NCBI GenBank assembly: GCA_009103225.1
Contig: RHPI01001116.1
Location: 379,380 to 443,379 of the forward strand
From: Chlorokybus atmophyticus
Taxonomy: Eukaryota; Plantae; Mesostigma and Chlorokybus algae
DNA: 64,000 bases
Direction of reading: 5' to 3'
The notes beneath the pieces were generated by a model. That model saw only the letters and a program-made list of their open reading frames with translations, searched no databases and had not been told where the DNA came from. Position numbers and translations under genes: made by a program. Shown here piece by piece: positions 1-59,293 of this stretch (positions are counted from its first letter, which is position 1; each line of letters opens with the position of its first letter).

Positions 1-1616
1 TGAGTCAAGAACTTCATGACTCTCAATGACAGATTGACAAGTGCACAACACCTTCGAAGATGGCCAACATGCATCTCCTTTGCAATGTTTGGAGAGGAGA
101 AGTCCACCAAACAGCGAGAATAGTTGATCTTTGGCGCCCATGCCTGAACACCTTGCCGGACCATCTGCATGACATATTCTGCTACCCACTGCTTCGACAC
201 AGTGACATTGATGAAGCCCGCGCCTGCACACATTGTGTTTCCCTTATGTAACTTACAACGCATTGTGTTTGCATTTGTTGTGCGCCAAGGGTTGCAAGCT
301 ATGCCTGCAACTGCTGCGGGCTCCGTGATCAGTGCATGATGCTAGTCGGTCACAACCATCTGTGCAAGTCAGTGTAACACGTTGGGCACGAACACTGTAC
401 CTGCAATGGAGGTCTTTTCAATCATCTTAGACTCCGGAAGCGCATCAAGAATCGCCTTAGCAACTACCTGCAACAGAGCGAACCAGATTAAAATGCGGTG
501 CACACCCACACACGCACACAGGCGTGCACACGCATGCACACGCAAGCGCGCATTGCACACACACAAACACGCATTGCAGCTTTTTATCTGTGTGTCATTG
601 TGATTATAACAAATAACAACAGATAGTACGTGTACCTGAGGGTTCTTATACTCTCCAGGGCGTTCCTTCTTCAGGCGCCCAAATAGACCCATTGCGTTGT
701 TGCATTGGTAGTCTCCATAAGTGGTGTTCTGGCACACAGCGACTGAAGGCTCCACGTCCATATCCGGAAACGCCTTCTTCAAGGCCTTCACAATGCAGGA
801 CACATTGTCAGCGGGTGGTACGCCATTCATGCTATACGCGCCATGAGTGACTTGCACACATTGCATGTGTGCTAGTCAAGCTTGCAAGGGACAGCCACTG
901 CTCACACTCTGTGCGAGTCAGTTGTATCGCAATGAATGCGACACAACCAACTAGCACACGAAGTGTGAGCAGTTGAGCAATGCTGACCTTTGTCAGTTCA
1001 CCCAACTGCACAAGCACCTGACACAACATAATTGACGACTGAATTGCTTGCTGACTCTCAATCAGTCATGCAACCAGCAAACAACGCACTCAGCATCAAC
1101 GAGTGCAGGCATTGTGAAAGTCCAACACTGCAATAGTTACAACTGTGTGCGTGAAACCCAAGCAGGCAGCTGCTGCCGCACAATCGCTGCATTGGGAGCT
1201 TTGTGGTAACTTGTTGGTCAATGCGAACACCAACCCTACTACATCTATTGAGCTGCAATCCTGCACACCTCTGCGAATAGAGCCTCCATACTGTCCGACA
1301 CGGCCGAACTGGCTGGGAACGTCTGAGCTGCGGCGGGCTGAGGCGGTGGGCTGGTTACAGCTGCAGCAGCGGCGGAAGCTCGGACGGCGAAGCTTGGGCG
1401 ACACAGACGAGTAGAACAAGCAGGCGCAGAACTACAAAGAGGAGGAGGAGGAGTCCAAGAAGGGCGGCCTGTGAGATGGGAGGAGAAACGGCGGCGGGCT
1501 TGCAGCACTGCCTTGCCAGCTGCTGAGCTGCGCCGGGAGAACTGCGACGTTGACGCTCCCACCAGTGACGTGGTCGTCAGTGCTATGCTAACGTGGCGCA
1601 CCTGCAACAATGCCAT
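1..1616 (-). CDS. ArgRS: Arginyl-tRNA synthetase, 5' part; gene continues beyond the left edge
   Basis: Exons 1616-1269, 785-636, 467-401 and 223-52 join in frame at GT-AG sites. They give MEALFAE|ALKKAFPD...YGDYQCNNAMGLF...|VVAKAILDALP...IAG|AGFINV...VDFSSPNIAKEMHVGHLRS, which contains the class I HIGH-type motif. A Ser/Ala/Arg-rich transit-like leader precedes Met at 1289. Confidence 0.95.
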
Positions 1617-6979: not shown

Positions 6980-9412
6980 TCAATAGTCATTGTCGTCAAC
7001 AACCTGCGCTTTGGCCATTTTGGTGGGCCAGTACGACAGCAAGAAGCCGCGCAGCTTCAGCCAGGAGCCAAACAGCTGGATCATTATCCACAAAAAGGCG
7101 TTGTGAAAAGAGTTCATCCACCCGTCCGTGTACGCCATCTTCTCTATCAGGTCTGCGCCATAGCGCCGCATCCACTCCTCGCAGTTCATCACCTGCGGGT
7201 TCAGCTGCTTCGTGGCTTTCGGGTCTCGCACATGCCCGGGACAACCCTTGTGGTACCTGCAGGGACATGGAACCCAACACGCTCAGGACTACTGTACTAC
7301 TCATGCAACAGCAGAATATATCAAGTGTGGACTTATGGACGCGCACACAGACACACGTACTTCTAGGCACGCGCAGGCATGGACGTTTGTGTGCGCGCAC
7401 ACACACACCGAATCCACACCACATGACTCTTACCAGTGATACATCTCAACAATCTTCTCTGCTCCGGGTATTGGCAGTCTAGCAAAGAACTCCAGGGAGA
7501 GCTGTTCATACTTTGCCTTCTTGCCCGTCACCTTTGAGAACGTCTCTACATACTGCTGCGGGGAGATGATGTCGCCGGCAGCTCGCAGCTCCTGCCCGCT
7601 CAGAAACTTGTCGGGGTTGTTGAGGATGAATGCCGCCATAGTGCCAATGTCTCTGCCCATGGGAGAAACATCAGTTGAATAGAGCATACATGTTAGCTCT
7701 GACATTACCAGTTCTAGCGATGTTGCACGTAATGCAGGTCGGGGTTATGCTGGTTGCACACATGCAAGCATACTCGAACAATGCTTGCAAGATAAGTCAT
7801 TGTTCAAACCATATCCCCNNNNNNNNNNNNNNNNNNNNNNNNNNNNNNNNNNNNNNNNNNNNNNNNNNNNNNNNNNNNNNNNNNNNNNNNNNNNNNNNNN
7901 NNNNNNNNNNNNNNNNNNNNNNNNNNNNNNNNNNNNNNNNNNNNNNNNNNNNNNNNNNNCCCCCCCCCCCCCCCCCCCCACACACACACCATTCAAGCCA
8001 TAACCCTTCCCCCCATCACCACCATGACCCTTTGCATGAGGTTGCACACCCTGTTGAGGTGTGTGTCACCTTGAAGACATGAAAGGGATGGGCACATCTT
8101 TCAGCAGCGGAATAGAGAACCGGTACTCCGTCCGCTCCTTGTTAACCAGCACACGCTTTGTTCCTCTTTTGGTCGCCACATTCTCATAGAAGAAAGAGGA
8201 GTGCAAGTACACAATCCACGGGAATGGCATAGTCTTCAACATGTCTGCCAGGAGACAAACAAATTACTACGCAATCATTGCACGCAAACGAGTGAAACAA
8301 ACGCACTTAAGTGCTTGTGTTTTTGTTGCATTAAGACCTGCCACATGCCTTCAATGTCTGCTTTGTTGTCCATTGATGGCACATTGATGCGCTCGCCACC
8401 ACTGAAAACCACCCGTTGAACTTTAGCCCGCAGTGCGCACTCGGCAAGCACCTTGCCTTGCTGAAACTGTTGGGACAAAGACATAAGTCAAACAGGAGGT
8501 AGCAGGCACTCAAGCAACACACCTAGACTGCGCAGACTGTTGGGATTGTACGTTAATGCACTGCATGCATGCTTGTTTGAAGTATTGACTGAAGTGTTGC
8601 TAAACAAGGCGTCTGCATATGTGCGCAACTAAGCGCATGCGTGCGCAACTGAGCGCTTGCATGCGCTTGGCTGTATGTGCGTGCATACTCGTGCATGGGC
8701 ATGCTTGTGGGCTTGTTCACAACAGCAGCCAAGTCAAGACTCATTGTCTGACCTCTGTCCCATCGTGATCCGAGAAGGTGATGGCGAACAGCGAATGCAC
8801 GCCCTCCATGGCCTTCATCACCGGGACCGGGTCAAGCAGATTGGCTTCATACACCTTCATGAATCCATCAGCAGTGTAGGTGTACAGTTTGAAACCCATA
8901 TGCAAATGGACTCTCATCACAACACATTACATCGCACTCTGCTGTGTACCAACCTACCACGGCAGCAAGCAGCAGTTGCATGCCTTGCCTCCATCCACCA
9001 ATTGCGCAGCAAACCACATGTGTGCATGCAAGCTTGGCAAGATACACGCATGCAGAGCCAAAGTACGCAAGCTGCTGACAGGCATGTCTGCTTTAAGCTG
9101 AGAGTGTGTCAGTGAATGGACTGACTGACTACTAAGTCCTGTCAGAAATCTCAGATATCAACAGTCCAACTGCTAGCAATGCCAGCATGCAAACACATAT
9201 ATAGCAAAGAGTTTTTGTACACACACCTCAACGCCCTTGGCCTTAAGGTCGGCGGCGGCGCGGCTGTTGGCATTGCGTGTAAGCGTGCGCACGGCCCACT
9301 TGCGCTGCCCGGCCTCGGTCCTGCTCTGCAACAGCTGCTCGATGCAAGAGGAGCCCTGCAGCCCTGTCCCGCCGCACACTAGAGCCACCGGCGGCGACAA
9401 CGACGACGACAT
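6980..9412 (-). CDS. NmrA-like NAD(P)-binding Rossmann protein (6 exons)
   Basis: VALVCGGTGLQG nucleotide-binding motif, VRTLTRN, FFYEN and RDIGTMAAFIL. Exons are phase-compatible, and intron 3 requires a GC donor at 8348. Confidence 0.9.
7819..7979. other. Assembly gap with flanking poly-C inside an NmrA intron
   Basis: N-run 7819-7960 followed by a C-run. Confidence 0.99.
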
Positions 9413-23489: not shown

Positions 23490-26400
23490 GCCGTGAGGGC
23501 GATGGCGGCGGCGGCGGCGGCGGAAGAGGAGGACGACGACGACAAGAAGTGCATTGAAGCTTGAGATCTAAACACCTGCTCAAGATTGTACACCTGCTTG
23601 GTCTGCCGGTCCGTTGTACACCAGCAGCAGACCAAGCAGGTGTACAAAGGGCGAATTGCGGAGCCAACTGCCTGCTTGACAGGTGAGCTTACTCAAGCTG
23701 GATTTGTTGACTGTCGCGATTGGCTGGCCTGTCCTCGCAGCCAACATTACCAATATAGGAGCGTTGTTGAAAATGCCAGCTGGCGAAACGCCGCAAATTG
23801 AATGCATGGTCCGAGTGCCGCAGCTGGGTCACGTCAATGCAAGCTGCCAGCTTGACCCTGCTGTCAGTGACGGCAGGGTTAAGCTGCTTGTGTGCGCGCA
23901 CGAGTGTATGTGCGTGGGTGAAGCGCAAGCGTGCAAGCATCTGTGTGGGTGCGGACTCGACGCACATACATGTGTTGAGAGCGCTTCTACAATTTGGCGT
24001 TATTTCAAATGCAGTGCTTGTTATCCGCAGTCATGCCAGCCTGGGTCAAACCCGCATACGACAAGCTCAACCAATGAACTGTCGACATCGGGTCCAGCAA
24101 GCCCAATACCAGATGCATCGCCTCAAGGATGTCAGGTCCATCGCATGTGTGCACATGTTCAAGCATGCTTGCCTGCGTGCATGCGTGGGTGCACTTACAA
24201 ACTTTTTGCTGATTATAGGCGATGACTCAAGTGACAGCAATGCGGACAGCACAGAAAGACATGCGCTTTTTCAAGACGACGGCAATCAAGAGCAAAACTC
24301 CAGTCAAGATCAGGCAGAATTGGCCATGCAATCGGTGCAACTGGCTTGAAGTAGCAGTACCTTCTGCTAGCTTGCTTAATGGCAACTTCGCTATGGCTCA
24401 ACCCACTCGTCCTCTCGAATGCGAACGGGGTGGTCAGGTGACTTGCTTGCTACCATGCCAAGCATGCAGAGGTTGCATGAGTTCAATGCACTTTCTGCAT
24501 GCTTTCCGTTGCGCCCAATATGTTGAGCCAGCTGCGAACGTGCTGTGCCGAAACGTGGCACAGCTTAGCAACTTGCTAACACGATTCAGCTGTGGCACGA
24601 CTTCTATTCACCTTGCATATTTATCAAGAGTAGTACTCATGACTTGCAGTCGTTTGTTTGTCTGGAGCTTTGGTGGAGGTGGCGCCCGCTTGGTGTCGCT
24701 AGCAAGCTGCTGGTGCATGCTAATGCAGGGGGCGTCTAGGCTGTGAAGGCTAGGGCAAGCGACAACTTGCAAGCAACTGCGCTTGGATTCTCTGGAGGAA
24801 ACAGCACGCAGAGATTCAATGGCTGTTCCGCGCATGGCTCAGGTTTGGTTGTCACAGGTGCGCATGGGCTTGTGTTTGTTCTGTCGAGCGTGTGCACGAA
24901 CGAGTGCGTGTATTTATGAGCCAAGCATACTAGCGCACATGCATGCATGCGCATGTGGACACATGCATGTGGGCAAGCGAGCATGCGTGGGCACATTGTG
25001 CCCATGCATGTGGCACGTGCATGCATGACATAGCCAGCCACCTGACCTCGTTAGAATACAAAGCCAACCAAATGCTCGTCGCCCAGGATTAGTCATTGCC
25101 AATAGTTGCTATGCCGCATGTTTCATCTTGCTGTGCAAAGGCACGCTCGTGCAGGCGTGCCTCACCTCATTGCTTAGTGCGCGTATCCACGCGGTGCAGA
25201 AGGAATCCATTGCTGTGGCCAGCACTGCCACAATGCAGGTGAGCTTCTTCACGCTTGCCATCATGCAGATACAACATCACATCAAGTGAGTAACCATCGT
25301 AGCACAATGCATGGCATGCATTGCAATGTGCCACATTGCAGTGTGTGGCAGGCTACAGGAGGCGGATGATATAGATTTGGTGAGACGCGTGCGTGGGTGC
25401 GTGGGCGCGCGCGCGTGATTACGTGATTATGTGCGTGTGGTGAAAAAGTAACTTTTTGACTGCCAGTGGTTGCTGCTTGCGATTTTCGACAACTTCAAGA
25501 CAACTTGTTGGTGTCTCGCCTTGTGTTGTGTGTCACAAGTTGTGTCCTTATCATGCAGGCGATGAAGATGAGGCCTTCCAGTTCAGCAACGATGAGAAAG
25601 AGGTTTTGATGTTGATTGAAAGTTGTCATGATGACGGCAACACTTGCGCCATCAACCAACGATTGTGCATGTCCATCCAGTTCGTTTGGCTGCACGGACA
25701 ACTGTTCCCTTACTTGCTGGTGAACATTGGCTTGAGCGTGAGCGTGGTCAAGGCACGTGTTCTCTTTACCTGTACACATGCTGCACTTCAAGCAACTTGC
25801 GCACACGCACACGCACACGCACACGCTTACTCTCATCCCCTCACTCGCATCACGCTTACTCCGGCACACAATCATATCATCCCACTGGCAACATGTGAGC
25901 GAGTCCAACTCGCGGGCCGCCTGTATGCATGCAGGTTCAGAGTCTTCTGCTTAGGCAACTTTAATGAGATGCTGGAGCCACAGGCAACAACGGCACGGTT
26001 ACCTACACGTATACGGTATTCTTTGTACGCCGTGTTGTTGCTTATGGGTTACTTACTTTGTTGGTGTTATCATGATGAACTACAGGAAGAACTTCTTGCA
26101 ATGCGCTGTCTCAGGCTGCAGTATCAGGACATGCTTGTGGGAGACATCTACGGTGGTGTGGACTACGCCAAAGTGGGCTTGTCCGTCTCCAGCTTCGGCG
26201 AGGCGCATGTCAAGTCGCCCGAGCGTGCCTGACATCCATGCTACGCACACACACTTTGTGCATGCAAGTCTCAACACACACTCATATGCGCGCGCTTATG
26301 CGTGTTTGTGCACACATGTCTGTTTGCCTGTGCATGCATCCGCGCGTGTTGAAACGCATCTACGCGCGTGAGCTTATGTGTCCAGGCGTAGACATGTTGC

Positions 26401-28960: not shown

Positions 28961-29089
28961 AGTATGGCAGGGGGTGAGACATGTATGTACACCGAATTGC
29001 AATGTGGTGCTTGTGAAAAGCTTGACAAGCATGACACACTGTGTCATGCATGGCATGACTCGCCATCACATAACACACAATATATGACC

Positions 29090-32000
29090 GCCTGCAGGCA
29101 TTCATCTTCAACAGCATCAATGACCAACTTGAACCAGCACCGTGTATAAAGCTTCTCATTATGCTTCTCTACAATGACAGCCTGTCATTACTGAGTATAG
29201 CCTCACAGCATGAACAATGCATCTACATGTGCCTCAACCTGCGTGGAATGCATCAATGTACAAACAATGCGAAACGGCAATGTATGCATCACAATCACAG
29301 CGACTGCCTGGTTAGTGACACTGCATGTATGCATGCTTGCATGGCTAACGGGGTGTTAGCAGTAGTAGGTAGATTAGGTAGAGTAGCCCCCGTGGTGAAC
29401 TACGTGGTAGTGTGAAACGTGAGTGGCATGATTGTGAGATGGTGATGGTCGCTGTGCATAAGCATATGCCACGCGCATTGTATGTACAATGCATCCGTTT
29501 TAGCAATAGACATGCCTACCCTTCTACCGGGCATACCGGGGCGCGCGATGTGTCTTCGCAGGATAAACCGCCGACGGCGTGTTACACCGCGCCACTGCAA
29601 CTAGCTGCATGATGCTATGCAACGACCTGCACCGCACATACCGTACATGCATTTATACAGTGACATCCTTTACTGTATGCACATGCATGCCGGCATTGTA
29701 GCACACCCCTTTTGTACAACTGTACCTGGGTACATGCCATGGCATACAGTAGCATACGGTAGTGGTTCAACCACTGGTTTGCCGCAGGACAATGTCTTAG
29801 CCTTGAAATTCTGGGTGTGCCAGGCAGCCTGGCCACTGGCACAATAGAACCCCTTTTATGTTGAGTCAACATACATGGGTAGTCTGTCTGCTGCTGCTCA
29901 TGCTGCTGGCTGCCGCAAAGACGCTCAAGACTGACTGTGTGCACACACGACGCAGTCGCGTTGAGCAGGGACGACGCTGTCGTGGGTGGCGGCGGTGATG
30001 TGGGCGGAGGAGGGGGAGTCCGTTGAGTCAGCTGACGCTGCTGCTGCTGCCTGCTGGATGATGGAGCCGCTAACCAACGGCCGTGGTGCAGGTGATGCGC
30101 GTGCATGCATGCTTGTCTAACGGGGTTTGGGCTAGTAGTGAAGTTAAGTAGGTAGCAAGTAGGAAGAGCACCCGGTGGTGAATGTAAGTGTCGTGTGCTG
30201 TTGTGTGTGGTGTGCAATGCATGCCTCACATTGTGATACATGCCACAATCTCTGCATCCTATATATTGTACACGTGCAGTGATAACTCCAACTGATGCAT
30301 CCTTGCATGACTAACGGGGTGTTGATTAGAGGGTCGGTAGCGGTGGTAGTGTCGTAGCTAGGCAGCCCGATGGTGAATATGTTGTGATGATAGTGATTTG
30401 GTGAGTAGCGTGCTTGCCATATTGGTTGCATGTATCACACCATGGTACGCATGGACACTTGCATGCGCGGTCACACGTCACCTTTACTGTATACACGTGG
30501 CCATGGCAGCGACAGACGTACTTGAATGTTGCACACCACCGCAGCTTCAAGCCTTGAGTCAAGGCTTGAAGCCCTTGACCGCGGCGGTCGAAGGTCGACA
30601 ACTCAACAGAATAGTAATAGTAATTGAATTACACAAACTAACAACCCCCAAACCTGGGGCAGGTAAATATAATCATCTACAGCCACACATACAGTTTTGC
30701 CAAACTGAAACAAAAATGCTACTGCACAGCTGACTACAGTTGCAACCTTGTCAGGCGGCAGTGCAGAAGTTGGAAGGGGGAAGCTTACACTGCAGCCCGC
30801 AACTTGGCCAGGGGGGGAAGTCTGGAAAAGAGCCATTGCTAACTGCAAACTCGCTTGTACAAGCTTGCTTGTACGAGCTCCGCTGCAACCTGAGGTCTCG
30901 TGGTCATAAAACACAAATTTCTGTGGACGCCTTTGGGTCAGGCGACAGAGTTGTTGCCAACCACGCTATACAGCGACTGCAAATGTTGATGATGGCAAGA
31001 GTGTGTGAGGGGAACCTATGTACGACGCCTAGAACGGGGAGGTTCAACGTCTCTGGGGCTTCTGTGCAGATGTACACCGATGTAGCTTGTCTCCCACTGC
31101 GGTGGGTTTGCCGACTTCTGCTGCTCCTGCAAGCACAGAGAGTAACGCCAAGAAATACTCAAGGAGCCATGCAGACTTGACGGCTTCTATTCGCAATGTA
31201 CTACATAGCAATGGTGTGTTTCAACGAACCTGCTTCTTGGCTTTGCACCCAATGGCGGTGCACTTGAAGTACTTTTTAGGATACACCGGCTCGTCTCCAA
31301 GGCAGTTCCTGTTTGAGGTCTGCTTCTTGCCGTACGTTTTCCATAAGTAACAGTCCACCAGCTGTGGCACCAGAATCGACAGGTTGGACTTTTGCTGCTT
31401 GACAATGTGTGCAGCATAACATTGATAACGTCATCCAGCAACTAGCACAAGCATACAAGTGCAGTCACTGCAAGTTCCAAAGCTGCCTACCGGTTGATCG
31501 CTTATGAAGACCTGTCGCTGAAGGTTGTGGTCGATGGTTGCGGCACGGTGCATGTTGCGGATGCCGAGATGAAGGCAGTCGGACATGGAGGTTGGAGACG
31601 AGGAGACGACCTGGAAGCTTCTGGCCGGGCCGGTTGAGCCAGAGTTTGCACAGCTCATTCCGAGCCGAGGAGAAGACCTGCTGGTGGGGCCCAGCTCAAG
31701 GCGGACAAGCTCCTCGTGCTCCTTGGGGCATGGCGGCAAGGAGGCGAAGCAGTTCATCGTCATAGACAGCGAGAGCCCGGCTGCTCAGCGAGCCTCAAGT
31801 TCACTGCCACCAACAGCAGCACAGCACACAGAGGGCTGCCTCACGCCCTGCTTCAACCTCCGTGAGCGACGCCAACGACGACGATGACGACGGCGACGAC
31901 GCCGCCGCCAAGCACAAGAAGAAAAGCTTAGCTTTGAAAGCTTGTTGAGAGGTTCCACTGACTATGCCAAAGTGGAAGAAGCAAGTTGCTATATGCACCC

Positions 32001-32160
32001 AGAGACAAAGCCCTCCGGTGCCGTTCCTGCGCTTTCCGCAGTGCGCAGCTCCAGCCTAAACCGCGGTTCATATTGTTGGTTAAGAACAAGGCGAAGTTTC
32101 TAGTTTAGGACGTCAACATCGTACCATGACGATGTTAGGCTGCAGCGAGAGATTGACGCC
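29090..32160 (-). repeat. Left arm of a long, diverged inverted duplication (partner ~35990-37890)
   Basis: Reverse-complement homology is readable from the promoter side (32100 ctagtttaggacgtcaac vs 36050 gttgacgtcttaaaactag) out to 29165-29250 vs 37720-37795. The left arm carries extra insertions. Confidence 0.9.
31016..31763 (-). CDS. Non-canonical WRKY-domain protein, copy A (171 aa; exons 31763-31491, 31361-31230, 31126-31016)
   Basis: Spliced ORF ...RQVFISDQP|LVDCYLWKTYGKKQTSNRNCLGDEPVYPKKYFKCTAIGCKAKKQ|EQQKSANPPQWETSYIGVHLH. It has a WRKYGQK-like heptad and a C-x4-C-x23-H-x-H zinc finger. Confidence 0.85.
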
Positions 32161-33375
32161 ATTGTGGTACCGTTTACCTGACGGTATGACTGACTACGAT
32201 GCCTCTCTGTAACGTGTTGTATAGCGAAGTGATGGCCAGCTTTGCGCTCGACGCCATCATGACGCCGTTGACGCCTTCACGGGGAAGGCTTCATCTGTGT
32301 CCCCGCCTGCGTGTCGAATCGACACTGTCGATGCCGCACTGCGTAGCAGCTTTCATGTCGGTACAAACGGTTACGGTTTAGATTGTTTCGTTTGCTACCA
32401 ATGACGAGTGAGTAGTGGTCGAAACATGTAGACAGTACCAGTGGGGTAGTGAGTACCTAGTGGTCAACAGTGGTAGCATACCGCTGCTGGCTGTCTCCGC
32501 AACGACCTGCATAATGGTGGGGACGGGAGTAATAAGTTCAGTTCCCCATGATTGCGGTGCGACCTTGGCATGGTATAAGAGCCTCCGGGGGTTGCAACTG
32601 GCGATTGATGGCGAAACCATGGCAATAGTTTATCTAAGTAAATCTAATTTAATTGTTGAAGGCTACCACTTGGAGAGCTCATATATACATCAAGAGTGTT
32701 TGCTTGAATAAAATGATGCAATAGGATATAAATGCATAATGTTTATCACATATATAGTACTATTTTTACTGCATGATAAGCAACGAAGCATCAAAAACAC
32801 TTGTCACCTTTATCTCGTTATTTTCTTTCAATTACCTGCAGCAACACAGTTGTATCAAAAACCTGATACATCATATTGTATTATATGACTTAGTAATCGT
32901 GTGTCAATGTTAATAGCGTGGTTGGCTCATAGATACGTCTAGGCTTGAACATGGTTACGAGCAAATCCGAATAAATACTGAACATCGCGATAAGCCATAA
33001 TGCTTTTAGTATATTATATTATAAATATTATTATAAATCTATTCTAATAACAAAGGTATGTTCATATCACATTTCGTTTTTGGATGATTATATGACTTAA
33101 GTAATCTTGCAAATACTACTTACATGTGTACATGATCATTCAATCAAATCCATGATAATATCAAAAACAATAATAAATAACATATTCATAGAAACGCTTG
33201 CAAAAGTGCAAAAGAGCATGCCATGTATAATATTTATCAGGCGTTTAAACACATACATGCGCGTACATAAACGTACGCAATGTGGTTACGTAATGGTCGT
33301 TAATGTTTTGTACTGCACAAGCTGTACATTATTATCAATACAAATTTATACAGCTTATAATAGTTAATATCTATG

Positions 33376-34272
33376 TGTAATAATACCCCTACTTACTTGC
33401 TGGTCGGGCTTGGTAAACCTATGCACAAGCACCAAGGACTTACAATGGCAGTCCCACAAGCACCACGATACACGGGATATTGCAGAAGCGCACCCAAGGA
33501 GGAGAAGATAACCACCAACTTCTCATGCAGCTCTAGCCCCAGGCACACCCACGCCCAACACACCCACATGCACACACAACACCACACCCCACAAGGGCTG
33601 AGGGGGAGAGCCCCTTAAACAGCTACAACTAGGCACCCCACACACGAGTGGCCCTCAAGTGGTGAACACACTCTTATCCCTACTTAAGGTTGCTACTAAG
33701 CATGTATACAACTTGCTGCTCTCCCGATCTGGCACACAGGATTTCCAAGGCTCAAGGCCTTGTCACTGTGTGCTGACCTATCAGCACAAGCTGACGGTGT
33801 CCAACATTAGACCCAACAAACTCCATATCGGGAGTATCAAACTCCCTTGGTTTTTCATAGGCGGAAGAATCTTGCCTCGGAACTTCAAACATAGGCTCTT
33901 CTGATACAATTGTACTTGCGGATTGCGCACATGCATCACTTAGCCTTGCAACTATCACCACAGTGGCAAATCGCACTACCACAGTATGATGATGTGGTTT
34001 GCCAACTTGGCTTTCTTTCTGAGAGCTGTCACATCCTATGGCAACTCCTCGATTTGGGCTAAAGTCCTCAGGCATTGACCAACTCCGTGCCAGCCCTCAG
34101 CAATGCCTTGTGTAGTTCATCACACTCATGGCCATATAGGTTCAAGAGTAGACCTACATGAGAGCGCACCCTACAAGCACTACACATGCGTACGGAATGG
34201 AAAACCCACTTAGTCTATTACTACATAAGTAAAGGACAGAGAATGACTTTTGCCAGCCTTATAGGCGTGACA
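33376..34272. mobile_element. Solo LTR (897 bp), probably Ty3/gypsy
   Basis: Termini TGTAATAATACCC...ATAGGCGTGACA (TG...CA). An identical 5-bp target-site duplication CTATG lies at 33371-33375 and 34273-34277. No internal coding region. Confidence 0.8.
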
Positions 34273-35989
34273 CTATGACACATGTGTGCGTTTCGTTGTG
34301 GATTGCGTAGCGCGCAAACAATGGTTGTCCTTCCAAGGCAGGTTGTTTAAGATTAACCTTTCAGCATATTACGACAAAAAAATCGTCCATTTATGTTTAA
34401 GAGTAATGTTGGGAATCAGCCCGCAAGTGTGTGTGTTTTTTCTTTGTCGTGTCTATACTGAGCTGTCATGTCTATTAAATGCTCATGAGTATTGCTTTTA
34501 CCTTTGTTGACCTCTATACATAATCATACAATTTTCAAGAATTAATTGGTTTTGCCAAGTATCATGACATCGTAGTGCAAACGAACGGAATTGATGGCGC
34601 AACATGGCAAGGCCGCGAGATCACCGCCATTCCGGGATTTAGATTTCAGCGAGGTGCGCAACAATTCTTATATGATTAGCGCAATCCTCATAATGTCTAC
34701 CTATTTATAACGTTGCCGCAGCTTGTTGCGCGTCACAATTATATATATGTCACACACACATATATAAATATATATATATGTATATTTATATATTATAACT
34801 ATATATATGCCCGCTCCAACAGGCGTTCGTGCTTATTTGCAAGCGGGGGTAAACACTAAAGCAGCAGCAGTGGAGTCGTCTTAAAATCCAGTTTTTTGAT
34901 CCGATAGGCTTTGTCCCTCTCGGACGCAGGCAGTCGAGAAGAAGTTTTTCAATATCATAAGAACAAACTTAAATCAGGGCAACGAGCACATATCTCCGCA
35001 GAAACGTGCCGCTGCCAACTTTGCCTAAGCTTGCACTGGTTGAATAACTCCTTTAACACTCGGCATGCTGTAAACAATTGTATAGTAAATATTGCTTTGG
35101 GGCGTCAAGGTTGATTTGTACTGGCATTGTAGCCCAAGTTATGAAAGCTTTATGCATGACAATTGCAAAGCTTTAGATTGTTAGGGTAAAAGCGTTGGGA
35201 GGGCTTCAAGTAGGGTTTATATGCAATGACTGATCTAACAAGCTGGCACCACCGCCTGCCGCTTGCCTTCCTAAAGTTTCGTTTGTTAAGGGGCTTATGA
35301 GTCACTTACGTCCTGACGGCACGAACAATGAAGCATGCTCCATGGGATGGCTGCCGCTGCTGAGCCTATCGGGAGGTGCTGCTCTGTGCTAATCAACTCG
35401 GGCTAAGATGTTGTTGCTATCAGCTGCCCTTGAAGTGACAAATCGAAATTTCATCTAGTTGATGTTAGCTCGAGTCATATACCAAATGAGGACGATTTCA
35501 TAATCATCTTGTATGTAAAGACTCAAATCCAGCTTGCACATGCACTACCCAAGGTAGTTATACAATATTATACGAGGAGGAATATAGTATAACCAATTAA
35601 ATTAATATTATTATTGAAGATATATTATGATATATCATTACATTAACACGCAAGTAACTTTGATATTGTTAGCCTTTGATGCTCGTCATATCCATGTGTT
35701 ACCCATCGTCTTCCATCCATGCCAACATCATAATGTGGTGAAATACACTTGATGCAATGGTGTGATTTTTGCCAATGATTGAAGTTTTGGCGGGAACTGG
35801 CTGGTTTCCCCATCACCAGAAGGGGACTCCTGGTGCAAATTGGCGAAACCCTTGGCGAAATCATCAGTGGCGAGACCCGCGAGTTTCACCGCACTCGGGA
35901 ATCTCTCACAGCGTCCCCGCCTGTCCCCGGGGCCGCAGCCTGTCACGCGTCACAGTACCGCAGCAGGCAGGGCGTTCGTGCTTATCCGG

Positions 35990-37890
35990 CAGCAATCGAT
36001 CTTCGCGACTGCAATCATCTGACAAACTAGCATGGCACAGTACCACGTTGACGTCTTAAAACTAGGGAAAATCTCTTCTTAACTCCTTATTTTTAACTAC
36101 AACAGCAACGAACCGCGGTTAAGCGGGGGAGCACACAGGCGCGGAAACGGAGGGCGCCCAGAGACACAGCTTTGTCTCTGGGTATAGCTTTGCTTCGTCC
36201 ACTTTCTTCTTGTCTGCTTGGGGCGGCGGCGGCGGCGTCGACGGCGCTGTCGTCGCTCGCGGCTGTCTAAGCAGGCTGGCGTGAGGTAGCCTGCGCCCGC
36301 TTTGTGTGCTGCTTCTGCGGCTTGTTGCTGTGAGTTGGTTCGCTGGGCAGCCTGACTCTCGCTGTTCTTAAGCTTGACTATACACTGCTTCGCCTCCTTG
36401 CCGCCATGCCCCAGGGAGCACGAGGACCTTGTCCGCCTCTAACTGGGCCCCATCAGGAGGTCTCCTCCTCGCCTCCGAATGAGCGCTGTGAACCCTGACT
36501 CAACCAGCCCGGCCAGAAGCTTCCAGGTCGACTCCTCGTCTCCGACCTACATGTCCGACTGCCTTCATCTCAGCATCCGCAACATGCACCGTGCCGCAAC
36601 CATCGACCACAACCTTCTGCGGCAAGTCTTTATCAGCGATCGACCGGTAAGCTGCCCTGAAACTTACAGTAACTGCAGTTGTTTGCTTGTGCTAGTTGCT
36701 GGATGATGTTGTTGATGCAACTCACCCTGTTGATTCTGGTGCCACAGCTGGTGGACTGTTATTCATGGAAAACGTACGGCAAGAAGCAGACTTCAAACAA
36801 AGACTGCGTTGGAGATGAGCCGGTGTATCCTAAAAAATACTTCAAGTGCACCGCCATTGGGTGCAAAGCCAAGAAGCAGGTCCGTTGAAACACCCGTTCG
36901 CACATGTTGCTATGTGTAATGCGCATAAAATCCGTCAAGTCCGCAAGGCAACCACCTCAAGTACATCTTGGCGTTACTCTGTGCTTGCAGGAGCAGCAGA
37001 AGTCGGCGAATCCGCCGCAATGGGAGACAAGCTACATTGGTGTACATTTACATAAAAGTCCCAGAGACATAGAACCTCCCCGTTCCCGTCGCCATACATA
37101 GGTAAACACTCTGTAAGACTCTGTAAGAGTGAATGAGCTCTTTCTTTACAGAGACAAGAACTGCCGCAGTGGCTCTGCCGCCTCACAAGGTTGTAGTTGT
37201 AGACAGCTGTACAGTAGCTTTGTATTCAAGGTGGACAGGACTGCATGTGTCTATCTGTTGATAGGTTTACCTACGCAGCTGAAGGTTGCTAATTGTGAGA
37301 TCCACATTACTATTCTGTTGAGTCTGCTTCTGACTGTCATGGTCACCGGATGCAAGCCTTGAAGCTGCGGTACTGTGCAAGTGCGTCTGTCCCTGCGATA
37401 GCCACGTGCTGACATGCGCTGGTGAACTGTGCCAGTGACCAGGCACACCAAGAATTTCAGAGCTAAGACGCTCTCTTGCTGCAAACCACTACCATATGCC
37501 ATGTACCCCGGTACACTTGTGCATGCAGTAGGGGATGTCACTGTATGTACACTTGTACGATATGTGTGGTGCAGGTTGCTGCACAGCATCAGCTAGATGC
37601 AGTTGCGGTACAATACGGTTATTTCTGCGGAAAAAAGTCGTGCGCCCCGTGACCCCCGTCAAAAGTGTAGGTATGTGTACTGTCAACACGGATGCATCGT
37701 GCGATTGCGATGTGTGCATAGATGCATTCCACGCAGGTCAAGGCACATGTAGATGCATTGCTCATGATGTGAGCTATACTGTCATTGTGGAGAACTCCTC
37801 CTCATGAGGCTCCTCATGAGGCTCAAGACAGGAAGCTCTATACACGTGTTGGTGAGCTATGCATGCAGTTGACTGAAGTTCATTGCCTGC
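35990..37890 (+). repeat. Right arm of the inverted duplication
   Basis: Reverse-complement homology to 29090-32160; see the left arm. Confidence 0.9.
36479..37101 (+). CDS. Non-canonical WRKY-domain protein, copy B (136 aa; exons 36479-36646, 36748-36879, 36991-37101)
   Basis: Same exon structure as copy A, giving ...LVDCYSWKTYGKK...CTAIGC...HLH. An upstream TAA and loss of the copy-A start shorten the N-terminus. Confidence 0.8.
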
Positions 37891-38199
37891 AGGTGGACAT
37901 GGACGAAGGTGAAGTTGAATCTGTTTAGAACAGCTTTGAACGCCCCGCCCTTCAACAATTCCCTCAGCAACGACCGCACCTTGCATGCATGATACATGCG
38001 CATTCGCTCACAAACATGCACGCACGCGCACGCAAGACCCACAGGCACCTTCCATGCATGAGACACGCACATCCATTCGCACACACGTGCTCGCGCACAC
38101 ACGTATTGCGCACGAGCCTTGTGCGCAATGCTAGGATCGCGCTCATACACACAGATTTAATTACTACTCAGGCCAACCTGGAGCCACAAGTTAGCTTGT

Positions 38200-42933: not shown

Positions 42934-42988
<55 letters not shown>

Positions 42989-43030
42989 TCTCTCTCGCTC
43001 TCGCTCTCCCTCGCTCTCTCTCTCTCTCTC
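42934..43030. repeat. (CT)n microsatellite
   Basis: Direct reading of the sequence. Confidence 0.95.
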
Positions 43031-48180: not shown

Positions 48181-48933
48181 NNNNNNNNNNNNNNNNNNNN
48201 NNNNNNNNNNNNNNNNNNNNNNNNNNNNNNNNNNNNNNNNNNNNNNNNNNNNNNNNNNNNNNNNNNNNNNNNNNNNNNNNNNNNNNNNNNNNNNNNNNNN
48301 NNNNNNNNNNNNNNNNNNNNNNNNNNNNNNNNNNNNNNNNNNNNNNNNNNNNNNNNNNNNNNNNNNNNNNNNNNNNNNNNNNNNNNNNNNNNNNNNNNNN
48401 NNNNNNNNNNNNNNNNNNNNNNNNNNNNNNNNNNNNNNNNNNNNNNNNNNNNNNNNNNNNNNNNNNNNNNNNNNNNNNNNNNNNNNNNNNNNNNNNNNNN
48501 NNNNNNNNNNNNNNNNNNNNNNNNNNNNNNNNNNNNNNNNNNNNNNNNNNNNNNNNNNNNNNNNNNNNNNNNNNNNNNNNNNNNNNNNNNNNNNNNNNNN
48601 NNNNNNNNNNNNNNNNNNNNNNNNNNNNNNNNNNNNNNNNNNNNNNNNNNNNNNNNNNNNNNNNNNNNNNNNNNNNNNNNNNNNNNNNNNNNNNNNNNNN
48701 NNNNNNNNNNNNNNNNNNNNNNNNNNNNNNNNNNNNNNNNNNNNNNNNNNNNNNNNNNNNNNNNNNNNNNNNNNNNNNNNNNNNNNNNNNNNNNNNNNNN
48801 NNNNNNNNNNNNNNNNNNNNNNNNNNNNNNNNNNNNNNNNNNNNNNNNNNNNNNNNNNNNNNNNNNNNNNNNNNNNNNNNNNNNNNNNNNNNNNNNNNNN
48901 NNNNNNNNNNNNNNNNNNNNNNNNNNNNNNNNN
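48181..48933. other. Assembly gap within an alternating purine-pyrimidine tract
   Basis: N-run flanked by (GC/AC/GT)-type repeats. Confidence 0.99.
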
Positions 48934-56877: not shown

Positions 56878-58800
56878 CTATCCTCGTCTCCTCGTCACAT
56901 GGTCGTATATCACCACTTGAATGTACTCACTAGTCGCCATCTGCCTCATTCAACAACAAGGTAAGCGGCCTGTCATGCAAGCTCAAGTCGAATGACAACT
57001 TGCAGCTCTTGCATATGCGACATTTATCAGCATAAACCCACCTCTATGCGAGTTGAGTTGTCGCCAGGTCTTGCTCGCGGATCAACCTGGTGGGGGGAGA
57101 CAAACACACGTGAGAACACTTCACCTCATCATGCATTGCAAAAGATCATCACTTGACAATGCTTGTGTCTAGCAATGCGGAGGTGTTGTGAAACTGACAT
57201 TGATAATCTTCCTGTCGCGCTTGTTCTTGAAGAGCAGCCCAGCCTCATTGTCGGCAATGACCTGTTGGTATGTTACGAGCCCTTCAGCCCCATATGAAAA
57301 GCACACTTCAAAGGCGTATGTTGCAATGGTTACCTGAAAGTTTTGGGTGGGGACAGATGTAGATGTCTGCGTGTCCCTGCGTAACAACAATACTTTTCGT
57401 CAAAAGCTGCTTGTACAATAACAGTATGAAGTGCACACACACACACACACACACGCGCGCGCACGCGCGCGCGCATGCACGCACGCGCGCGCGCATGCAC
57501 GCACGCACACACACACATGTGCGCACATACGTGCATGCACGCACGCACGTGTGCTCACATGCGCATGCATGCATGCATGCATGCACGCGCACGCAATAAA
57601 GTTACCAGTTGTAGAAGCTCAGGTCTGTGGCTTTGGGCAGCAGCCGTTTCTTGCGCTCAAACACGGGCTCCAGGTTCTCCGTCTTCAGGCGATGACCGTA
57701 GTCGATGTAACCAGACACCTGCACTCACAACACGTGTCCACATGAGTCTTTCCTCGCTGATACTGCTGTAGCTTCTTAGGCATACACACATGCCAGCAGC
57801 GTGTACACGCACCTCTTGCCCGCGGCTGTTGCGGTCTCTTATGAAGATGATAGTCTGGTTAAGGCGATGCACACATGTGTGAGAGTATGTTGGTGGAGTC
57901 ACTACGCCAGCGTTGATCCCAACCCAAGCACACGAAGTCTTTGCGACACACATACACACACTCTCGCATGCCCCCNNNNNNNNNNNNNNNNNNNNNNCCA
58001 GCCCCCACACCCACACGCACGCACGCAGGCAGGTTGCATCCCTCTCAACATACGCGCACCGAGAGTTTGCCAGACCTCACGCTCTCTTCTCTCTGCTGAA
58101 GTGCCTGCCAGGGGCACACACACGTGCATAAAGGTTGCTGATTAGGCACCATGTGTTGGGATTGGGGTGGTTGTACATAGGCGCCATAGGTTGTACGCAT
58201 ACCAACCTGCAGTAGCGGGAAACCCTCGCAGTGCTTGCCCGCGCTGGCGAGCTGCTTGGGCTTGTTCTTCAGCTTCTGCTCGCATTTTCAATACGTAGCA
58301 TGGCTTCAGTGTCGGCAGCTCTGTGCTTGCGCTCGTGCGTGCGTGCGTGGGTATGTGCATGTGGGTGGGTGGGTGGGTACGGGTGTGTGAATGTTTGTAT
58401 ACCTGCAGTCTGGCCTGCTCGGCTGCCTCCTTGCGTGCTTCAAACTCCTCGCGTTTCATTATCTCACCGTTGCCTCTGTACCTGCACAGCGTTGGCAAAG
58501 CCAAATGGTCACACCAATATGTACACTTACGTAAAGTTCTGTCAAGTCTTGCTGGCAAACTGTCTGAGTGCCAAGTTGATCCTACTTTAGCATCTGTGTG
58601 CGTATGTTTTGTATAAAACAGTTGACTGTGCTTGCCCAAGTTCGACCAGCTGTCGAGCGAGTTCGATGTCCTCAAGATAAAACATGTCCACCGGGGTGAT
58701 CTGCCTGTCCAGGTAGTCCTCATATCTGCAGCGAAAAGCAGCTTGATTAAAGAGAATTGTAACTCTAGTACCCAGTCACACAAATCTCTGCACTCGAACA

Positions 58801-58884
<84 letters not shown>

Positions 58885-59293
58885 NNNNNNNNNNNNNNNN
58901 NNNNNNNNNNNNNNNNNNNNNNNNNNNNNNNNNNNNNNNNNNNNNNNNNNNNNNNNNNNNNNNNNNNNNNNNNNNNNNNNNNNNNNNNNNNNNNNNNNNN
59001 NNNNNNNNNNNNNNNNNNNNNNNNNNNNNNNNNNNNNNNNNNNNNNNNNNNNNNNNNNNNNNNNNNNNNNNNNNNNNNNNNNNNNNNNNNNNNNNNNNNN
59101 NNNNNNNNNNNNNNNNNNNNNNNNNNNNNNNNNNNNNNNNNNNNNNNNNNNNNNNNNNNNNNNNNNNNNNNNNNNNNNNNNNNGAGAGAGAGAGAGAGAG
59201 GGGGGCACCCAGCCCCCAAAACAGCACTCACGTGGTAAACTGTATGATGAAGCTATCGATGCCGTGCTCGCCATTGCTCTCCCCGTCATCCAT
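56878..59293 (-). CDS. CFAP299: Cilia- and flagella-associated protein 299 (10 exons)
   Basis: FTT|[30 protein letters not shown]|[17 protein letters not shown]...[14 protein letters not shown]|[12 protein letters not shown]...DLSFYNW...[14 protein letters not shown]|[13 protein letters not shown]...[13 protein letters not shown]. Intron 2 has a GC donor at 58635. Confidence 0.93.
58803..59200. repeat. (GA)n microsatellite interrupted by an assembly gap, in CFAP299 intron 1
   Basis: Direct reading; N-run 58885-59183. Confidence 0.95.

Follow-up and report, generated by a model that had tools for sequence, protein, structure and literature searches.

The 64-kb window of the Chlorokybus atmophyticus genome analyzed here (64,000 nucleotides (nt) of contig RHPI01001116.1, assembly GCA_009103225.1, forward-strand positions 379,380 to 443,379; coordinates below are those of the window) contains two copies of a small spliced gene predicted to code for a WRKY-family DNA-binding domain with the unusual heptad WKTYGKK. 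Copy A (31658-31016, minus strand) and copy B (36479-37101, plus strand) form an inverted, mirror-image pair placed head to head, with 4.8 kb between their facing 5' ends. The gene models were read from the sequence of both strands, and they bear out the two outward-pointing spliced open reading frames (ORFs) of the original prediction as three-exon genes with GT..AG splice sites in both copies. Each specifies 136 codons followed by a TAG stop, distributed over exons of the same length in the two copies (168, 132 and 111 nt), while the four introns, all of phase 0, measure 129 and 103 nt in copy A and 101 and 111 nt in copy B. Exon 1 of copy A (31491-31658, minus) comprises 56 codons from the ATG shared by the copies, contains no known domain and is followed directly by the donor GTAGGC at 31490; its counterpart in copy B occupies 36479-36646 (plus). 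Copy A has a further in-frame ATG upstream at 31763, which would extend the ORF by 35 codons; since the same frame is closed by a TAA in copy B, the shared ATG is the likely start. The approximately 95 nt immediately upstream of it (31659-31763, minus, and 36374-36478, plus) are conserved between the copies without insertions or deletions (indels) and are probably the 5' untranslated region. Exon 2 (44 codons; 31230-31361, minus, and 36748-36879, plus) carries the heptad, a long hairpin and the C-x4-C half of a zinc finger, and exon 3 (36 codons plus the TAG; 31016-31126, minus, and 36991-37101, plus) supplies the second half of the finger with its H-x-H motif and, in copy A, a basic tail.

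The ORFs of exon 2 match the Pfam WRKY profile PF03106 with E-values of 4e-7 in copy A and 7e-7 in copy B, so that the search with the WRKY hidden Markov model, which had been proposed as a check on the family assignment, identifies the domain in both copies at 30.6 and 29.8 bits, above the gathering cut-off of 21. These scores come from exon 2 alone and cover profile positions 2-38 of 59, exon 3 by itself being too short to score. No other Pfam family is listed for the exon 2 ORFs up to an E-value of 10, and the PDB chains matched by exon 2 are WRKY domains only (AtWRKY33, AtWRKY4-C, AtWRKY1-C and others). Exon 2, whose protein sequence is 91% identical between the copies, reads LVDCY(L/S)WKTYGKKQTSN..GDEPVYPKKYFKCTAIGCKAKKQ, and exon 3 goes on EQQKSANPPQWETSYIGVHLH.... 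Joining the two yields a C-x4-C-x23-H-x-H finger, with 5 + 18 = 23 residues between the cysteine and histidine pairs. NPKVLVTTYEGNHNH from a plant WRKY domain can be aligned with exon 3 gap-free and in register: in both proteins 23 residues separate the second Cys from the first His, so that splicing as modeled brings the finger back to its canonical spacing. In a six-frame translation of the window, WKTYGKK occurs exactly twice, at 31343-31323 (minus) and 36766-36786 (plus). It retains the W, Y, G and last K of the canonical WRKYGQK, which is itself not found, and replaces R with K, K with T and Q with K. Between the heptad and the YP dipeptide lies a linker of 13 residues, and in phmmer alignments to solved WRKY domains the hairpin from the heptad to the (Y)P-x-x-Y motif is longer by seven inserted residues. 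The replacement of the heptad, the length of this linker and the intact finger, all of which had been described in the original prediction, are hence found again in both copies. Since other WRKY proteins naturally carry variant heptads, the missing WRKYGQK does not exclude membership. The two copies are thereby predicted to encode a recognizable but non-canonical WRKY-family domain. It shares with the plant WRKY factors (PF03106; the group I C-terminal domains of AtWRKY33, AtWRKY4 and AtWRKY1; PDB 8k31, 1wj2/2lex and 2ayd) the order of elements in the domain, the Trp-x-x-Tyr-Gly-x-Lys strand, the (Y)P-x-x-Y(Y/F)KC motif, the C-x4-C pair, the 23-residue spacing to H-x-H and the T-x-Y-x-G preceding the histidines. 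It is distinguished from them by WKTYGKK, the 7-residue hairpin insertion, the single domain in a protein of 136 residues and the lack of a PR-type intron.

The second intron (31127-31229, minus, in copy A and 36880-36990, plus, in copy B) interrupts the finger in phase 0 before the sixth residue after the second zinc-binding Cys (CKAKKQ | EQQ) in both copies. This position and phase define the V-type intron of WRKY groups IIa and IIb (PMC3976811), described by Rinerson et al. as the hallmark VQR/QVQR intron of these groups (PMC4350883), and both copies have it. Conversely, the PR-type phase-2 intron, which follows the Arg of PR in the group I C-terminal domains and groups IIc, IId, IIe and III, is absent, the YPKKYFKC stretch being uninterrupted within exon 2. 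Relative to the IIa/IIb genes of land plants and Klebsormidium, the pair has in common the phase-0 intron before the sixth residue, the K-Q preceding it and the single WRKY domain; however, it shows none of the other hallmarks listed for IIb (C-x5-C, QVQR and DGCx; PMC4350883), having C-x4-C instead of C-x5-C, QEQQ instead of QVQR and VDCYL/S instead of DGCx, that is, D-C-Y-x-W where those genes have D-G-C-x-W. With about 180 slots available when position and phase are counted together, a match by chance coincidence appears unlikely; however, the CAG|G junction at this intron is of the usual proto-splice kind, and we treat the shared intron as a lead.

Comparison of the two copies points to sustained constraint on the protein. 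Over the 80 codons of exons 2 and 3 there are 15 synonymous and 7 non-synonymous codon differences, exactly the count given in the original prediction. The Nei-Gojobori ratio of non-synonymous to synonymous divergence (dN/dS) is 0.18 for all 136 codons, 0.51 for exon 1, 0.17 for exon 2 and 0.05 for exon 3. A maximum-likelihood codon model (F3x4, kappa estimated) gives an omega of 0.21 for all codons, 0.11 for exons 2 and 3 and 0.39 for exon 1. The likelihood-ratio test against an omega of 1 yields 20.8 for all codons (p 5e-6) and is likewise significant for exons 2 and 3 (p 3e-6), though not for exon 1. Purifying selection has acted on both copies since the duplication, as the original prediction had claimed. 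Its description of the introns as ridden with indels also stands: the 411 nt of exon sequence differ by no indel, whereas the introns, with about 215 nt in all, show 13 events (6-7 each) and are 88% identical. Over the last 20 bases or so of each intron, the copies hardly differ. Seven of the 50 four-fold degenerate sites differ, which is near the intron level. The codons of the heptad are identical in the two copies; therefore, the change to WKTYGKK predates the duplication and has been kept since.

The duplication extends beyond the genes as colinear inverted blocks, found by sensitive BLAST, that pair 29084-31924 with 37900-36203, and the outer limits originally proposed for the pair match these ends of detectable homology at 29084 and 37900. 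Arm A (29084-31924, minus) comprises the gene together with some 270 nt on its 5' side and a 3' flank that holds about 1.1 kb of additional sequence; arm B (36203-37900, plus) is delimited by the same colinear blocks. Each copy retains the common 5' flank of about 270 nt, at 84% identity. The gene is 81% identical between the arms, the 3' flank 67-75%; identity peaks at the exons, with 93% in exon 2 and its borders and 85% in exon 3, and drops toward the outer ends. This uneven divergence may reflect partial gene conversion that affected the 5' part. In exon 3 (31016-31126 versus 36991-37101), 13 differences are synonymous, set against about 24 Nei-Gojobori synonymous sites, which gives a synonymous divergence (dS) of about 1, while dS in exons 1 and 2 is 0.18-0.23 and the introns differ by just 12%. 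The exon differences comprise 33 transitions and 10 transversions. Between the two 5' ends lies an unduplicated spacer (31925-36202), which had been described as AT-rich and about 3.9 kb long: its guanine-plus-cytosine (GC) content is indeed lower than that on either side (about 44% versus about 51%), but the unduplicated length is 4.28 kb. The ORFs scanned in it contain no Pfam domain above threshold.

Searches for relatives returned little beyond the family itself. The exon 1 ORF of copy A (110 residues) has no match in a word search of 5.8 billion proteins. Among 1.84 billion representatives, a HMMER search with exon 2 retrieved two proteins with E < 1e-3; we rejected the first as a repeat artefact belonging to no Pfam family, and the second, 48% identical, is a canonical plant protein that has four WRKY domains. 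At that library size the 44-residue query is blind below about 55% identity, and the nearest database protein is just 40-48% or so identical to the pair. A search of JGI metagenome contigs with the alignment of the exon 2 sequences confirmed none of 600 pattern matches. The outcome of these searches is the lack of a close relative and of an annotated copy, rather than the lack of a homolog. In the literature, a search of some 8.4 million papers and preprints finds the string WKTYGKK in none of them, and the word WRKY occurs neither in the Chlorokybus genome paper nor in those of its supplements that were searched. A published census counts one WRKY gene in Chara, two in Klebsormidium, none in Chlorokybus atmophyticus and one in Mesostigma (Li et al. 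2020, PMC7455551, Supplementary Table 8). The pair is apparently absent from the annotation behind that census, in agreement with the blank protein searches. By their description, the single-domain algal WRKY genes without land-plant counterparts (PMC4350883) resemble the pair in having one domain, in coming from green algae and in standing outside the canonical groups; they differ in having been described from chlorophyte prasinophytes. The WRKY family is known; WKTYGKK is a new variant of its heptad, and the pair has an intron position of the IIa/IIb type.

The substitutions in the heptad can be set against mutagenesis of the C-terminal domain of AtWRKY1. There, K314A, which removes the Lys of the WRK triplet, abolishes binding to the W-box and K314R weakens it; R313E and Q317K also weaken binding, R327A abolishes it, and R331K and Y330F are tolerated (PMC1851648). 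At the corresponding positions, the pair has Thr for K314, Lys for R313, Q317, R327 and R331, and Phe for Y330. By homology, the WKTYGKK strand would lie in the major groove as in other WRKY domains, and zinc would stabilize the sheet. Scaffold and basic surface would have been kept, while the key base-contacting Lys has been lost and the adjoining hairpin is longer by seven residues. Taken together, the Lys-to-Thr change, the exchanges of Arg and Gln for Lys and the longer hairpin make it probable that the protein binds something other than the canonical TTGACY W-box or binds the latter more weakly, and we infer an altered or relaxed DNA specificity. That the domain is so strongly constrained (omega 0.11) speaks for continued use of this surface. 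The best explanation of the locus is an old inverted duplication of a real nuclear gene, whose protein of 136 residues has one WRKY domain and would act as a small zinc-dependent DNA-binding transcription factor. For this reading as a whole, including the zinc-dependent DNA-binding role, we estimate a probability of roughly 0.7.

Several points weigh against it. The whole-domain score and the fold are pieced together from the two halves of the domain in separate exons. The Lys-to-Thr change could mean that DNA binding has been lost instead of having gained a new specificity. The pairwise omega is an average over both lineages, and the recent death of one copy could be hidden in it. The protein and metagenome searches provide no annotated protein or ortholog to show conservation beyond the pair. 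A look-up of RNA sequencing runs with a 6.1-kb query listed no run, a result close to uninformative, as the coding sequence of each gene makes up about 5% of the sampled words and a query of this length probably exceeded what the threshold of one-twentieth allows. The value of the case is limited: it offers two paralogs only, their gene models are known from the sequence alone, and the intron that would tie them to groups IIa and IIb may have been gained in parallel at a proto-splice site (CAG|G).

The main alternative to an altered specificity is a total loss of DNA binding, whereby the fold would be kept and the small protein would act via protein contacts, for instance by titrating the partners of other factors. 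Such an outcome would suit a Thr at the position where an Ala mutant abolishes binding, the Gln-to-Lys change that lowers binding in AtWRKY1 and a very short protein devoid of any other domain. Against this, selection is strongest on precisely the domain, the Trp, Tyr, Gly and last Lys of the heptad are kept, and the positions of R327 and R331 have remained basic as Lys, which together is the pattern expected of a surface that still contacts nucleic acid. We therefore regard the loss of sequence-specific binding as improbable and continue to favor a DNA-binding protein.

A second alternative concerns expression: the gene could have been functional for most of the time since the duplication, with one or both copies now silent and for that reason missed by annotation. 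The blank RNA look-up, the lack of an annotated protein, the count of zero WRKY genes for Chlorokybus in the census and the replacement of the critical DNA-contacting Lys would all fit such a relic. However, the ORFs, all eight splice sites and the zinc ligands are intact in both copies despite the indel-rich introns, omega lies well under 1, the substitutions between the copies show no bias toward mutational decay, and the RNA look-up carries next to no information for the reason given above. Hence, we consider silencing of the pair about as unlikely as the loss of its DNA binding.

Least probable by a wide margin is an origin of the domain in a mobile element of the WRKY-GCM1 type (Mutator-like or FAR1-like), whether it is still part of one or was captured recently, with the inverted arms as the element ends: WRKY-GCM1 folds do occur in MULE transposases, the look-alikes in the ESM Atlas are FLYWCH or FAR1 clusters (scores of 0.76-0.85, all under the 0.9 line and leads only) and the inverted-repeat geometry is compatible, but Pfam gives WRKY and neither FAR1, FLYWCH, GCM nor MULE (no match of the exon 2 ORFs to PF03101, PF04500 or PF10551 up to an E-value of 10), none of the 20 neighboring ORFs of spacer and flanks contains a transposase or other transposon domain in Pfam, direct repeats of at least 30 nt and repeats resembling long terminal repeats are absent from 26-41 kb, terminal repeats are lacking apart from the gene duplication, just two copies are present in the window, and identity is highest at the exons and lowest at the outer ends, the reverse of what terminal inverted repeats show. 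The fingers of FAR1, FLYWCH, GCM1 and MULE proteins thus share with the pair the same broad fold class and a weak resemblance in a protein language model, while the pair has neither a profile match to any of them nor a transposase context, and the transposon reading was rejected for want of a transposon domain and of direct repeats. We likewise rejected decay by methylation or by a process like repeat-induced point mutation: there is no bias from GC to AT in one copy (strong-to-weak substitutions between the copies number 49 versus 34, p 0.12, and are not skewed), and the ratio of observed to expected CpG is an ordinary 0.79-0.84, like that of the rest of the window. The suggestion that the genes sit in a mobile or silenced island finds no support, in view of the missing transposon domains and repeats, the unbiased substitutions, the ordinary CpG ratio and the housekeeping genes (arginyl-tRNA synthetase and pantothenate kinase) found in the same window.

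Of these housekeeping genes, arginyl-tRNA synthetase is represented by exons at 372-875 (minus; Pfam Arg_tRNA_synt_N, E 1e-9), with a second exon apparently in the same open frame past a short intron, and pantothenate kinase by a short exon with a match to Pfam Fumble (E 7e-8) at about 25690-25755, within 25444-26229 (plus). Scans of the window with Rfam and for tRNAs gave no match. W-boxes near the genes and in the spacer occur at the background rate, with no enrichment, and autoregulation through them was rejected on this count. Near the middle of the spacer there is a palindromic (AT)25 run (34760-34808, within 34740-34808), and close to the outer end of arm B a perfect 12-nt tandem repeat, CTCCTCATGAGG, is present in 2.2 copies (37798-37824). 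The 3' flank is about 1.1 kb longer in copy A than in copy B, the additional sequence lying at 29262-30472. It includes a Gln/Pro-rich ORF of 208 codons (29615-30241, minus) without a significant Pfam match, and a 29-nt motif occurs three times in the 3' flank of copy A, at 29329, 30101 and 30295. Elsewhere, a GA/CT dinucleotide microsatellite appears twice in opposite orientation, at 42935-43030 and at 58803-58884, the second adjoining an assembly gap. There are five such gaps, seen as runs of N totaling 1608 nt (2431-2823, 7819-7959, 48181-48933, 57976-57997 and 58885-59183), and apparently low GC in the bins at 2-4 kb and 48-50 kb is due to these runs. The GC content of the window is about 51%, and its figures agree with the published table for C. 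atmophyticus, which lists 51.6% GC, a mean exon of 172 nt and a mean intron of 166 nt; the runs of N likewise fit the published assembly, which was scaffolded from short reads and has gaps.

WRKY factors are among the signature regulator families of green plants, and the origin of their groups is still debated. Chlorokybus atmophyticus belongs to the earliest-diverging streptophyte clade, and the pair implies that its zero in the WRKY census reflects a gap in annotation and not a loss. Furthermore, the genes present there are of the single-domain type and share the intron position that marks groups IIa and IIb. Rinerson et al. (PMC4350883) put forward two hypotheses for WRKY evolution, "Group I" and "IIa + b separate", and held that more genomes were needed to decide between them. 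A bolder possibility, which we put forward only tentatively and consider less likely to be right than wrong by a good measure, is that the pair is a survivor of an ancient single-domain streptophyte WRKY lineage, in which the intron at the VQR position would predate the split of Klebsormidium and land plants and in which WKTYGKK and the longer hairpin would read a DNA element different from the W-box. On this view, Chlorokybus would possess a divergent WRKY type that annotation overlooked, and the label WRKY-less would not apply to it. If so, such a lineage would be the "single domain algal ancestor" called for by the "IIa + b separate" hypothesis. The genes also alter the one Lys of the heptad that mutagenesis has shown to be indispensable for W-box binding. 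They hence offer a testable case both for the origins of the WRKY groups and for the drift of a DNA-reading strand under selection.

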